From Dimorphilus gyrociliatus (lineage: Eukaryota; Animalia; Annelida), in the NCBI GenBank assembly GCA_904063045.1, contig CAJFCJ010000007.1:864819-928818 (forward strand): 64,000 nucleotides of DNA, in the 5' to 3' direction. Made by a program: the position numbers and the translations under genes. The notes under the pieces are model-generated. The model searched no databases. It was given only the letters and a program-made list of their open reading frames with translations, and was not told the origin of the DNA. Shown here piece by piece: positions 31,858 through 36,819 of this stretch. How positions within the stretch are numbered: the first letter of the stretch is position 1; each line of letters starts with the position of its first letter.

Positions 31858-34800
31858 ATGCAGAACGAACAACAGCTAGGAAATCTCATAGATTCTGATT
31901 CCGCTCTGGATGTCGGTTTTGCCTCATATGATCACTTAGCAGGCGAGTTTTACTAAATCTTTCACTGTAGAAGACAATTATATGACTTTGGAGTAATTTG
32001 ATAAGAAACTCCTTTGTTTAAACCCCCAAAGAATGACTGGTGGGTACATCATGAACTTAAAATAATTTATTGTATTGTTTCTTTTCACCTGTCACCTCCT
32101 AAGTCGATTTCTAATAATTCAGCTAGCTTTTTACTATTTCTAATATATAGAGAGACTAATGATATGTCTGACTGGCTGTTATAATAAGAGATTAGTGATC
32201 TTGGGTGATAAATAAAAGGGTTTCGTATGTAATTATAACATATGTATAAAAAGCATTAAAATTTCCAGTCCAGACCGGATATAACCTGCTACCATCGTAT
32301 TGGATATTTCTCGGTAAACATTTAGGAACTTTAGCACTTTATACTAACTTAAGTTTATGTAGTCACTTTTCAACTATAGGATTTTTTACATATTGTAAAA
32401 TTTTGTGAAACTGTTTGAAATTAAATGTTCATACATAATTTAAAGTTACTAATGATAGATGTTTGCATTACAAAGCTTTTATATAAGAAAGTACTATACC
32501 GTATTACCAACCTAAAAAGTCGTTGTTTAAATAAAAAGTAAAATAACTTTCATTCTTCACGTAACTTTTAAATAGTATTAATTAGAAAGTAGTTAGAATG
32601 TTACGAAAGCTTTTTGTTTGTTATAATTCTCTAATTCCAATTATCTATCCAATTATTATTTGGATTTTATTTTATTTTGTAAAAATTGCTTTTATTATCA
32701 AAATAATTGTTGATTGTAAAAAGCATATGACGCTATTTAATTAATTAGTGTTTTTTACTTTTGTTCTACGTAATAAGACATTCAAATTTCAATTTACGTA
32801 CTTTTAAAACATGAATGTAATTTTTAATTGATCTCTATAGGATCAGCGGATTCATCACAGGAATATACTCGTTTGCTAGGAGAGGAAACTGATGAAAATT
32901 CTTTTCCTGATGATCCTAAATTTTCTACAATAATACAAGATGTTGAATTAGCTATTTGTCATTGTATTTATCCAGAAAGGATATATCAAGGTTCTTCTGG
33001 CAGCTATTTTGTTAAGAATAGTAAACGGGTGAGTTAGCCTACAATTTAGTTATTAATCCATTGAAACGTTTTATTAATACATTACGTGATTTTTATCATA
33101 TCAAGAAGTAACTATAATCTATAAATAGGAAAAGGATATACCTTATCAAATATTTAACCTAATTAACTCATTTCAAGTTATCAAATTGTATATGTATATA
33201 AAAGTTACATATATAATATAGACATATTATAGCTTTCCTTCGAATCACACCTTTTACCTTTCAATCTCTTTCCTTTTTTTTGTTTACATTCTAACGCTTG
33301 AATTTATCCAAAACAAGAACAAAAGGTCATAAACACTGAGCTATTATATTTTCTATTATGACGTAATAATTCTTATCTTTAAGTTCAATATTCGTTAAAA
33401 ATTGTATAATACTATTATTTTGCATACATAGTACAAATTAAAAGTAGATATGCACCTGTTCCTTTTGCCTTGTATATTCTTTGTATTATTGAGTTTATGT
33501 AAAATATAGTTTAAAAAAAAAGAAAAAACGAATTCTTTTATGGAAATAAGTAAATAAAAATTTATTTAAAACTAGTATTTACATATATATATATTGTAAA
33601 AATGAAAATATTTAGATATTTTTATATTTTTTCTAAAATTTAGGCCTAATTATGTATACCGAAGCAAAAGGGTAATGAGTGTCGAACAAAAAAATAATTA
33701 GGCCTAAAAATATAACTATTTGCCACATCAATTATTTTATTGATTTACATATTTTTGAGTTGAGCAGAAGAGAGAATTTTTCTAGCTGATTGACTATATA
33801 TATATATATATATATATATTTAAAGGAGAAATATTCTAAATAGAGAAGACATTTATTATAAAAAAAAATTAATATTTTAGACAACGAGCTTAGTTTTTTT
33901 TTTTTTGTTATTTTAGGCCTTCATATTTAGTGTTGAGTAGTTAAAAAAAGATTTGAGCTCTACTTGAATTTCAAGGCATTTTATTGTTTTGAAGACAATC
34001 GTTAAATGAACAGCTATGGATTTAGAAACTAGAAAAATTACTGATGTTGATACTGGATATTCTATTACTTCGAATACGTGTGGTGAAATAACGGAATATG
34101 ATGAAAAACAAGCAATTACGAATACGAAGATGAAACGAAAAATTCAACCATTGACGTCGGAAGGCGGTTACAAACAGTTGATATCTGATTACGTTGAAAC
34201 AATTATCAGGCCAAAAGATAGGAGATATCAAAGTGACACTGAATTCTTATCAATAATAAGAGAGGCATAGAGGCGGATTTAGAATTAGCAACCATATATA
34301 TTAAAAATGTGGAATTATTTAAAATCTAGGTTTAGTTTGTATTGACAACAATTGTCACGTACTAAGAAAAAAAAATTAATAATGACAATTTTAACAAATC
34401 ACATGTTAAGAAAAGCTATAAGGAGAAATTTAATTTTAAACAACATGGAATAGTTGATATATGTTTTTTCTAAATTTATCAACTATTTTTAAGACATTAA
34501 CGTATACTAGATATCGAAATATTAGATATCAGAAAAATTGTTATTTTTAACTTAGCATATTAATTTAAAATTCAAAACGATTATTTTCATTCTAGTTACT
34601 TTACGTAAAAAAGGCAAAAAGAAAAGAAAAGAGGAATACTAAGCAAAATTTCAAATTTTTCTTCCTTTTATCTTTTCTTTTCTTTTTTTTGCTTATATAA
34701 GAAAAACATATTATTTAGTCATCAAACTAGTTGCTTTTCTTTTTTTTTTTTTTGTTTTTTTCTCTTTTTTTATAGGTTTTTCTCTCTCTTTTTTTTTATT

Positions 34801-36819
34801 ATTATTATTATTATTATCTAAATTAGGAGAGAAAAAAAAATTAATTATATTTTGTTATACAGGCAAATTGTATCGATTATTGTAAAAAGCAAAAATTTAG
34901 CAATACACAGTACTATATATTTAATATATCATAAATCCCCCTCTAAGAACAGACTTTGCTAGCTATTGAAAATAATATTCACCCATTACTCATTAGGCAA
35001 GGTTCAAGTGGAAGCTATTTTATGAGAAATTCAAAAAAAGTTGGATATTTATAATTATTCTTTTCTGTTTTATCTTTAAATTTTTTATTTAAACATTGAA
35101 TTTTATTAATTTAATTATTTATTTATTTGTATATTTTATTACATTTCAGGACATTATAGGAGTATTTAAGCCAAAAGATGAAGAACCGTACGGTCATTTG
35201 AATCCAAAATGGACAAAATGGTTACATAAAATGTGCTGTCCATGCTGTTTTGGAAGATCATGCTTGATTCCCAATCAAGTAAGTATATTCATATATATAA
35301 ATTATATATAATAGTTTTCAATAGTATTGTTAATTGAGAAATAATTTCAAATTTAGGGTTATATGTCCGAAGCGGGCGCTAGTCTTGTTGATGAAAAATT
35401 ACAGTTAAATGTCGTGCCAAAGACAAGAGTAAGTTCGTTTCTCTTTTCAATTATTTGTACATTATAAAAAATTTATGATTCTTTTTATTACGTATAAGAC
35501 GGCGAAGTATTATAAAATATACTATTTTATTTGATTGAATAAGTGTATACATTATAAAATCTGACAATTTATTTTAATAATTTTTTTGTTTCTTTTCCAT
35601 TTTTCAGGTAGTCAAATTAGCTAGCGAAACGTTCAATTACACTGCTGTTGATAGGGTTAAAGCAAGAACGAAAAAGAGTATCGCCGAAAGTATACCCGAA
35701 ATAGGTCGAAGGTTTAATAGATTAGGCCTAAGACCAAAAGTAGGATCATTTCAATTATTCGTAAAAGGTAAGCATCAAAGAAAGTTTATCTTCTTTTTAA
35801 ACTTTGTTGATGGGAATAGGATACGAAAGGGAAAGAGAAATTTTAAAATATTTAATAAACTGTATAAATATGTAAATTTATTGATAATAAAAAAGAAGTT
35901 GATAAAGAGAATTTCTTTTTGAAAAATATGAGAAATGAAAGAAAAAACATTATTTTTTTGTGTAAATACTTTTACGCTTGATTACTTCAACTGTAAACAA
36001 TTGAAGTGTGGTGTACTTGCTTTAAAAACTTAATACTTCCCTTTTTGAATAGCAATTTAATGTTCTTTTTAGGCTACAAAGACGCTGATTTTTGGTTAAG
36101 GAAATTTGAGGACGAAGGAATGCCCGAAAACATTTCACAAGACTTTCAACAACAATTCGAAAGATTAGTTGTTTTGGATTATATTATTAGAAATACTGAC
36201 AGAGGCAACGATAATTGGTTAATTAGATATGACAAGCCGGAAGGAGAAGAAGTACGTGTTACTCTTTGTTCATTATTAAATGTTTTTCTTCTACTTGCTA
36301 ATTAACGACATCTTTGTAATGATCCTTTTATAGGAAAACGAAGGAGATTTCGAAGTAGTGAAGAAACCCGAAATAAAGATTGCAGCTATTGATAATGGAT
36401 TAGCCTTTCCTTTCAAACATCCAGATGAGTGGAGAGCTTATCCATACTATTGGGCTTGGTTACCTCAAGCTAAAAAGCCATTCTCGGAGGAAACAAAGGA
36501 TTTGGTTCTTCCGCTGATTTCCGATAGGACTTTCATCGATGAGTTAGTTGAAGAATTATACGTTCTTTTTCAAAGTGACAAAGGTTTTGATACGAGACTG
36601 TTTGAAAAGCAAATGAATGTTATGAGAGGACAGATAGTTAATTTAATTGATGCTCTGAAGAGTAATAAAACACCTCTACAGTTGGTTCAAATGCCAGTTC
36701 AGGTTGTTATCGTTGAAAGAACTAGACGAAATAGAAGGCCAAACTTTTCATCCAGCGCGGAAAGTGGAGCGAGACTTTCACAACACTTCTTTAAAGCGCC
36801 GTTTTTTTCATGGTGCTGA
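31858..36819 (+). CDS. PI4K2: Phosphatidylinositol 4-kinase type II (PI4K2A/B orthologue) with two alternative N-terminal exon sets
   Basis: Module 1: 31858..31942 (GC donor CAG|GCGAGT) + 32841..33028. Module 2: 34016..34264 + 34953..35039. Shared exons: 35150..35278, 35357..35428, 35608..35767, 36073..36251, 36334..36819. Motifs [24 protein letters not shown] palmitoylation motif, [25 protein letters not shown]. Confidence 0.93.
33795..33819. repeat. (TA)n microsatellite
   Basis: TA run about 200 bp upstream of the alternative PI4K2 start at 34016. Confidence 0.9.

Follow-up and report, generated by a model that had tools for sequence, protein, structure and literature searches.

A single type II phosphatidylinositol 4-kinase gene of the annelid Dimorphilus gyrociliatus contains two homologous 5′ modules, and the best explanation of the data, to which we give a probability of roughly 85%, is that these modules are alternatives, each used singly with a common set of downstream exons. 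The gene lies on the forward strand at about positions 31858-36819 of the window, i.e., the 64,000-nucleotide stretch of DNA that was analysed. Modules 1 and 2 are both transcribed and correctly spliced, and both are under purifying selection. An initial sequence-only reading of the locus had proposed one PI4K2 gene with two duplicated, mutually exclusive N-terminal modules. The modules are homologous units in tandem on the same strand, as seen from a gapless 45-residue alignment with 20 identities (44%) and from a BLASTP match between module 1 exon 2 and module 2 exon B (E 5e-11). The coordinates and translations given in that reading all hold when re-read from the sequence, as do the phase 0 module ends, the GT donors at 33029 and 35040, the common acceptor before 35150, and the EYTRLL and YKQL motifs of modules 1 and 2, respectively.

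Gene layout and transcripts

Module 1, which is of the type that we call A, consists of two coding exons and 91 codons. Exon 1 (31858..31942) has its start codon at 31858, ends in phase 1 and is followed by a GC donor; the 5′ UTR extends at least to 31700, as judged from a transcript contig of run X3 spanning 31700-31943. Exon 2 (32841..33028) ends in phase 0 with the GT donor, and codes for the EYTRLL acidic dileucine motif, the N-lobe helix, a 13-residue segment that includes the G-loop, and the first part of the following strand. There is also an alternative 5′ exon, the 3′ end of which (32033..32039) has an ATG at 32033 and a GT donor after 32039. This ATG is in frame with the exon at 32841, giving a short A-type N-terminus that begins M-T-G. 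The joint 32039>32841 (GT..AG) is present in run X3 of the transcript data, together with a second, weaker joint, 32313>32841. The ATG and donor context of the alternative exon are apparently kept in L001, a relative with a syntenic locus, judging by open reading frame translations.

Module 2, of the B type, has 112 codons in two exons. Exon A (34016..34264; 83 codons) has a start codon of its own and is followed, in phase 0, by a GC donor; it codes for an N-terminal region with YKQL and for the first half of the N-lobe helix (QSDTEF...). Exon B (34953..35039) ends in phase 0 and supplies the second half of the helix, followed by a 13-residue segment that includes the second G-loop and by the first part of the next strand. 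Both modules end in a QGSSGSYF G-loop, and the internal introns of both have a GC rather than a GT donor (at 31943 and 34265), an assignment that is backed by RNA joints. Downstream, either module joins in frame, at phase 0, to the first common exon (35150..35278). The remaining common exons (35357-35428, 35608-35767, 36073-36251 and 36334-36819, the last ending at the stop codon) code for the remainder of the kinase domain according to their translations, and their joints are found in runs X1, X2 and X3. The predicted isoforms are ~432 residues with module 1 and ~453 residues with module 2, of which the 341 C-terminal residues are in common.

The transcript data are RNA-derived assembled contigs from three runs, X1, X2 and X3. 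Three junctions had been predicted from the sequence, and all three were found: 33028>35150, which connects module 1 to the common exon, and 34264>34953, within module 2, are present in X3, while 35039>35150 is present in X3 and, independently, in X1, a run from a different study. The GC..AG joint within module 1, 31942>32841, is also present in X3, where depth in the intron bins is zero; X1 and X2 contigs retain some intron sequence 5′ of exon B. No serial joint of module 1 to module 2 was found in the three runs, although assembled contigs lose rare forms, and a rare serial or hybrid transcript could still occur. Under the proposed mechanism, transcripts starting near 31.7-31.9 kb would include module 1, with a splice that takes 33028 to 35150, and transcripts starting at or upstream of 33911, in the large intron, would include module 2 and splice from 35039 to 35150.

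Tandem exon duplication is a general mechanism by which mutually exclusive or alternative exons arise, reportedly described by Kondrashov and Koonin in 2001: homologous neighbouring exons are used one at a time, with the reading frame kept into a shared downstream exon. Unlike tandem-duplicated exons in general, the Dimorphilus units are blocks of first exons, each with a start codon and probably also a promoter of its own, and they include the nucleotide-binding loop of a lipid kinase. Which module is used is therefore likely to be decided when transcription starts, and not by competition between splice sites. In X3, the module 2 contig has its first base at 33911 and no joint upstream of it, as would fit a separate first exon, although contigs cannot show RNA ends and a poly-T run could produce such a boundary. 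This position falls within a non-coding block, 33894-33942, that is conserved (84% identity to L001) where module 2 transcripts have their 5′ end, and that stands alone in an intron that is otherwise unalignable to the relative. The block is a candidate core promoter or transcription start region for module 2. Separately, an out-of-frame ATG at 34006 opens an upstream open reading frame of 8 codons in weak context; it is not conserved in the relative, and could dampen translation of module 2.

Kinase identity and the exchanged segment

Membership of the PI4KII branch of the PF00454 family is indicated by the G-loop, by the motifs of the first common exon, and by the catalytic-loop and activation-loop segments. 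Pairwise alignments, motif tables and trees were made from joined exon translations. The G-loop GSSGSYF is found in both modules, including the equivalents of human S134 and S137, when aligned to the structures 4hnd, 4pla and 4wtv. Module 1 exon 2 matches solved human PI4K2A (4hnd/4pla) with an E-value of 9e-15; for module 2 exon B the match is weak (29 amino acids, E 0.04). A sequence search with module 2 exon A gave no PDB match, as expected because this N-terminus is of low complexity. The first common exon contains the FKPK ATP-binding lysine (human K152) and the CCPCC palmitoylation motif, in stretches of 12 and 11 residues, and segments of 11 and 10 residues correspond to the catalytic and activation loops. 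PF00454 is detected on the last two exons (40.6 and 36.8 bits, versus a cut-off of 27.1), and the first common exon covers profile positions 18-55. A Pfam search with the module exons alone gave no match; the profile begins just past the G-loop region. A representative search with the last exon as query returned 976 homologues, among which the worm’s own full-length protein was absent. Top representative matches that lack a G-loop proved to be vertebrate proteins with mis-modelled N-termini.

By alignment, the exchanged segment corresponds to residues 1-146 of human PI4K2A. It spans the disordered N-terminal region, where the adaptor-binding signal sits, together with the N-lobe helix, strand 1, the G-loop and strand 2, and the boundary between module and common exon is at the turn preceding the strand that bears Lys152. 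Structural work on human PI4K2A places the G-loop at residues 130-136, with S134 and S137 binding the beta-phosphate; R129 touches the membrane, and an R129A substitution reduces activity (Zhou et al. 2014, PMC3974213).

The A/B design across animals and the rival readings

Both modules are intact at the syntenic locus of L001, which keeps all splice sites, both GC donors among them, and retains E..LL and YKQL. Across the exons, dS relative to L001 is 0.3-1.1 and dN/dS is 0.13-0.34 (0.34 and 0.16 for module 1 exons 1 and 2; 0.28 and 0.125 for module 2 exons A and B). The sequence-only reading had named absence or disruption of module 2 in close relatives as an observation that would speak against it, and the opposite is seen in L001.

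These comparisons bear on the suggestion that module 2 is a dead partial duplication, with intronic pseudo-exons transcribed as noise. Such a duplicate might be expected to resemble solved PI4K2 as poorly as exon B does, to have no detectable PDB homologue for exon A, to have an out-of-frame ATG upstream, and to be found in contigs that retain neighbouring intron sequence, as in X1 and X2. However, both module 2 junctions are precise splices, one of them seen in two runs from different studies; both exons lack indels in the relative at a dS of ~0.7-1.1, with dN/dS of 0.28 and 0.125; the relative also preserves their splice sites, even the unusual GC donor; and in many molluscs and in Lineus, isoform annotations include homologous B modules. 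The dead-duplicate reading is largely refuted, and we consider it very improbable. Equally improbable is that the modules are normally used in series to make a protein with two G-loops. While a joint 33028>34953 would keep the frame, since both boundaries are in phase 0, and while a deposited Intoshia protein (OAF70685.1) and a Bulinus protein carry both modules in series, neither 33028>34016 nor 33028>34953 is present in any run, and 33028>35150 is. No acceptor is used at exon A, which has a start codon of its own. Moreover, the Bulinus and Intoshia models require weak acceptors, and there is an in-frame ATG just 5′ of each of their B exons; RefSeq gives the two forms as alternatives, X1 and X2, in Lineus and Dreissena; and a doubled strand-loop-strand would probably not fit the N-lobe sheet of the published structure (PMC3974213).

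The module arrangement is not special to the Dimorphilus genome. Gastropods and bivalves have the A/B design too, as do two nemerteans, Capitella (whose PI4K2 has three modules) and the orthonectid Intoshia; only one module is present in a chiton, in amphioxus and in a spider mite. The upstream A modules keep an E..PLL dileucine and a residue equivalent to human Arg129, and the downstream B modules have a YxxΦ-type tyrosine motif (YKQL in Dimorphilus) and Leu at position 129. In Dimorphilus, module 1 has EYTRLL and PER, and module 2 has YKQL and PLL with no dileucine. In the motif table, this pattern is shared with L001, Lineus, Tubulanus, Capitella module 3, Intoshia and most molluscs; the B-type N-terminus of Mytilus is without a Yxx[LIMV] motif. 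At the gene level, isoforms X1 and X2 of Lineus correspond to an A and a B first exon that have their common exons in common, the common parts of Dreissena X1 and X2 are identical, the Bulinus and Intoshia loci each contain both modules, and in Tubulanus a B module lies unannotated within intron 1. RefSeq isoforms of Dreissena polymorpha, Physella acuta, Haliotis, Argopecten and Lineus longissimus likewise come from one gene with A upstream and B downstream. In molluscs and Lineus, the A first exon carries a 20-residue stretch, the B first exon has a tyrosine motif and P-x-L before the G-loop, and, as in Dimorphilus, both splice at phase 0 into a common exon that starts with a 15-residue stretch. 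There are also differences: the mollusc and Lineus modules are single exons, whereas each Dimorphilus module has an internal GC-AG intron, and mollusc B modules have a GTSGCYF G-loop preceded by Lys, whereas Dimorphilus module 2 has GSSGSYF preceded by Gln.

The occurrence of the A/B design across molluscs, nemerteans, annelids and Intoshia, with kept motifs, points to an old spiralian isoform switch. One ancient duplication is the favoured origin; the B module would then probably date from the spiralian stem. A different possibility, which we consider unlikely although well short of negligible, is that both modules are real alternatives but arose by a recent duplication confined to dinophilids, with the likeness of module 2 to the B modules of molluscs, nemerteans and Capitella being convergent. 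Trees made on 45-49 columns bear on this question. In these trees, module 2 groups with B rows and module 1 with A rows, including support of 97/83 for module 1 with Tubulanus A, and constraining all B rows to a single clade gives a fit no worse than that of the free tree (p 0.51). Forcing the two Dimorphilus modules into one clade costs 6-10 log-likelihood units, but AU tests on so few columns do not reject that clade (p 0.21 and 0.28), and the short B rows have long branches. A private duplication would also be consistent with the retention of GSSGSYF in module 2, where molluscs have GTSGCYF, and with intron positions within the modules that are unlike those of other taxa. It is harder to reconcile with the order common to the taxa, in which A is upstream, B is downstream and both use the same phase-0 acceptor, with the Leu129 and tyrosine motif that B modules have in common, with the match of QSDTEF and YFMR to Tubulanus B, or with an identity of only 44% between modules 1 and 2.

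Comparison with vertebrate isoforms and proposed function

The sequence-only reading had likened the modules to vertebrate alpha and beta. As a functional analogy this stands: PI4K2A and PI4K2B are, like the worm isoforms, two PI4KII forms with a conserved catalytic core in common, whose differences lie mainly at the N-terminus. Orthology does not, and the worm A/B and vertebrate alpha/beta pairs are analogous. PI4K2A and PI4K2B became separate genes by a duplication early in vertebrates (Brown and Auger 2011, PMC3024228), whereas the worm forms come from one gene, through alternative first exons that join shared downstream exons. Both vertebrate proteins have an A-type G-loop region with Arg129, and both have dileucines; the worm has a dileucine form and a tyrosine-motif form, and the G-loop is swapped too. 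In the trees, vertebrate 2B groups with A-type rows. Vertebrate beta was considered as an orthologue of the B module and rejected because it has an A-type stretch of 16 residues. Alternative N-termini in the arthropod Schistocerca americana (isoforms X1 and X2) resemble the worm pair, with ENQPLL in one and YEEI in the other, but the arthropod forms share one helix and G-loop exon, so that the catalytic N-lobe is unswapped.

In vertebrates, adaptor signals sit in the N-termini (PMC9524207, citing Craige 2008 and Wieffer 2013), with AP-3 binding the IIalpha dileucine and AP-1 the IIbeta dileucine. By analogy, the worm isoforms may be sorted via different adaptor interactions, through a dileucine in one and a YxxΦ signal in the other, and they may differ in membrane contact of the G-loop region and hence in kinase regulation. 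A sorting function for YKQL is suggested by its conservation, with the proviso that YxxΦ motifs are short and often arise by chance. A more specific proposal, which we regard as tentative and somewhat less probable than its negation, is that A/B is an ancient switch, stem-spiralian or older, that couples adaptor choice to the residue beside the G-loop in one exon block. The adaptor part would be the acidic dileucine versus the tyrosine YxxΦ signal, and the membrane-contact part Arg129 versus Leu129, with GTSGCYF in addition in molluscs. If so, promoter choice would set the site of kinase delivery and the response of the ATP site to the membrane together, and PI4KII would have subfunctionalised by a route that does not depend on the alpha/beta gene duplication of vertebrates.

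Reviews and phylogenies have treated non-vertebrate animals as having a single PI4KII, and have attributed alpha/beta specialisation to vertebrate gene duplication (PMC3024228). The present comparison indicates that a large animal clade has two PI4KII forms (three in Capitella) from one gene, with a swapped first-exon block that carries both the sorting signal and the nucleotide-binding loop. The A/B forms are on record as RefSeq isoform entries X1 and X2 in molluscs and one nemertean; the literature searched, which covered PI4KII isoforms, mutually exclusive G-loop exons, the phylogeny of PI4K2 and the tandem duplication of exons, yielded no paper that describes it. The modules amount to a natural, evolutionarily tested chimera pair for effects of the N-terminus and G-loop on PI4KII localisation and activity, and the compact 5 kb Dimorphilus gene, with both modules, is a handy experimental system. 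The comparison also exposes annotation errors, namely the serial double-G-loop models in Intoshia and Bulinus, a Capitella A exon that is called a separate gene, and the Tubulanus B exon that is missing from the annotation.

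Two modules and their conservation

The two-module structure of Dimorphilus PI4K2 claimed by a sequence-only reading was reproduced by reading the sequence over 31700-35400 and translating the proposed pieces; the finding is real, and the interpretation given with it is supported. On the + strand, module 1 (31858-31942 + 32841-33028) translates as 91 codons and module 2 (34016-34264 + 34953-35039) as 112; each ends in a phase-0 GT donor, and a single acceptor precedes the common exons at 35150. Over their final 45 residues the modules can be aligned with no gap and are 44% identical, and their G-loop exons match each other by BLASTP with an E value of 5e-11. 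The solved human PI4K2A matches the module 1 G-loop exon (exon 2, 32841-33028) with E 9e-15 and the 29-residue exon B of module 2 (34953-35039) with E 0.04. A motif scan found exactly two G-loop exons in 25-40 kb of the window; the common exons hold FKPK and CCPCC together with the catalytic and activation segments and the PF00454 matches. New relative to the earlier reading is a GC donor in the intra-module intron of each module (31943-32840, CAG/gcgagt; 34265-34952, GAG/gcatag; both + strand), with RNA joints for both; the two GC-AG introns occupy non-homologous positions within their modules.

Evidence for conservation came from a search of protein representatives with the last exon, which returned a fragment of 80% identity from a Logan assembly. 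On the 25-kb contig that carries it, L001, a TTC21-like gene is followed by an oppositely oriented TFIIB-like gene and then by PI4K2. In L001 both modules are intact and every splice site is kept, including both GC donors. The introns are mostly unalignable with those of the window apart from small conserved islands, among them 33894-33942 at the putative start of module 2 transcripts. In Nei-Gojobori comparisons of the window with L001, the exons of module 1 have dN/dS of 0.34 and 0.16 and those of module 2 have 0.28 and 0.125, with dS of 0.3-1.1. Module 2 is conserved under selection; it is neither absent nor disrupted in this relative, whereas the sequence-only reading had envisaged absence or disruption for a dead partial duplication. 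The dileucine is kept (EYTRLL in Dimorphilus, ENTPLL in L001), as is YKQL. The window neighbours (regions 28624-31487 and 37131-38971) include an upstream TTC21/IFT139-like gene (+) and a TFIIB/BRF-like gene (−, 30207-31487) encoding an acidic poly-Asp tract, both syntenic in L001, and a downstream EHD gene (+).

Expression and splicing

Three RNA-derived runs were read as assembled contigs. X3 behaves as cDNA of Dimorphilus gyrociliatus, since its contigs lack all the introns and match the window at 99% identity or more. X1, from a separate study, is a coral metatranscriptome, and X2 is a marine one, with contigs that differ by 2-6% from the window over 34833-36812 and come from a close relative or another strain; X2 has one change in the 87 bases of exon B (His to Asn), and five changes and one indel in the 120 intron bases upstream.

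Both modules are expressed, and the junctions predicted for them were recovered in X3: 31942>32841 (GC-AG) and 33028>35150 for module 1, and 34264>34953 (GC-AG) and 35039>35150 for module 2, the last also seen independently in X1. Downstream introns are spliced in all runs. A 472-base X3 contig starts at 33911, spans exons A and B and reaches the common exon, and no upstream joint leads into it. No joint from 33028 to module 2 was seen in X1-X3, which, being assembled contigs, do not allow RNA ends, levels or rare forms to be read. Additional 5′ variants of the A form (region 32011-32313) use joints 32039>32841 and 32313>32841; the donor after 32039 is preceded by an in-frame ATG at 32033, giving a very short N-terminus, and the weaker donor after 32313 sits inside a block (32248-32327) with 84% conservation in L001. 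Module 2 begins at a start codon of strong context, which is overlapped by an 8-codon uORF (34006-34032) whose out-of-frame, weak-context uATG at 34006 is absent in L001.

The design in other animals and its age

The two-module design is widespread in Spiralia and probably old. Scanning retrieved homologues for double G-loops recovered the Intoshia linei model, whose locus holds an A-like exon, a B-like exon and then a common exon, with an ATG and open frame upstream of the B exon. The Bulinus model likewise joins in series a pair of first exons separated by about 5 kb. In both loci (L004, Intoshia linei, 6001-7014; L005, Bulinus truncatus, 3001-10299) the modelled protein has two G-loops, the modelled acceptors are weak and the B exon is closely preceded by an in-frame ATG; these serial models are probably annotation errors. 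Searches by name showed that RefSeq lists isoform pairs for many gastropod and bivalve species and for Lineus longissimus; the Lineus X1 and X2 proteins are encoded by different first exons and the same common exons, and the common parts of Dreissena X1 and X2 are identical. In Capitella teleta (KB300427.1, about 3822-11604), a single common exon is preceded by three first exons that bear a G-loop. The A-type one is annotated as an independent gene of 127 aa, the B-type one is used in the deposited protein, and the middle module has a DDELLL motif together with Arg129. In Tubulanus polymorphus, intron 1 of the annotated PI4K2 contains a B-type module missing from the gene model (locus L011, about 3780-4075), with a start codon, DYEHL, QSDTEF, GTSGAYFMRD and then a GT donor. 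In the locust, two N-termini (ENQPLL versus YEEI) share one G-loop exon. Land snails Candidula unifasciata (P0156) and Bradybaena similaris (P0163) have an additional separate PI4K2-like protein with a B-like G-loop region, HCSPCC replacing CCPCC and a diverged common part; this protein seems to be a gene duplicate specific to their lineage. An ordinary B isoform (P0199) is present in Bradybaena as well.

A chiton, amphioxus and a spider mite have one module only, all with the same phase-0 intron before x-IIGVFKPK, so that this intron predates the duplication. The duplication itself could be private to Dimorphilus, and trees, poorly resolved because only 45-49 columns are alignable, do not reject this (p 0.21 and 0.28), but it fits 6-10 log-likelihood units worse. 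On the same columns, module 1 falls among A-type modules with Tubulanus A (support 97/83) and module 2 among B-type modules (89/79), and a tree constrained to a single clade of all B-type modules equals the unconstrained tree in fit (p 0.51). One old duplication is further favoured by the module order and acceptor common to the taxa, by Leu129 and the tyrosine motif in B modules, and by the QSDTEF and YFMR strings common to Dimorphilus module 2 and Tubulanus B. We consider a single old duplication the likely origin of the A and B modules, at a probability of roughly 0.75.

Literature searches found no paper on the A/B arrangement; Brown and Auger 2011 (PMC3024228), who sampled no spiralian, reported single copies outside vertebrates and plants. 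The Dimorphilus arrangement is less singular than at first sight, because databases already list isoforms in molluscs and a nemertean, and broader, being a feature conserved in Spiralia.

Differences between A and B forms

All A modules carry dileucines of the E..PLL type. In most B modules a Yxx[LIMV] motif precedes the helix by 10-25 residues; it is commonly YE.[ILM], with YKQL in Dimorphilus and other forms in several bivalves and Intoshia; in the motif table it is absent from the Mytilus B-type N-terminus. Numbered as human PI4K2A, by alignment and following Zhou et al. 2014 (PMC3974213), residues 127-129 are P-E-R in A modules and P-x-L in B modules. R129 of PI4K2A is reported to touch the membrane, and R129A reduces activity (Zhou et al. 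2014). The nucleotide-binding S134, S137, I130 and F139 are kept in Dimorphilus module 2, and the G-loop reads GTSGCYF in mollusc B modules and GTSGAYF in Tubulanus B. The boundary with the common exons lies in the turn preceding the K152 strand, and each module therefore supplies the entire N-terminus through the second strand.

The gene most likely works by promoter choice between the two first-exon blocks, which would produce two forms of the one kinase, one with the dileucine and one with the tyrosine motif, that differ also beside the ATP-binding loop. Vertebrate dileucines connect IIalpha with AP-3 and IIbeta with AP-1, according to PMC9524207. The proposed alpha/beta-like isoform diversity holds as an analogy: the worm A and B forms are analogous to the vertebrate IIalpha/IIbeta split, but not orthologous to it.
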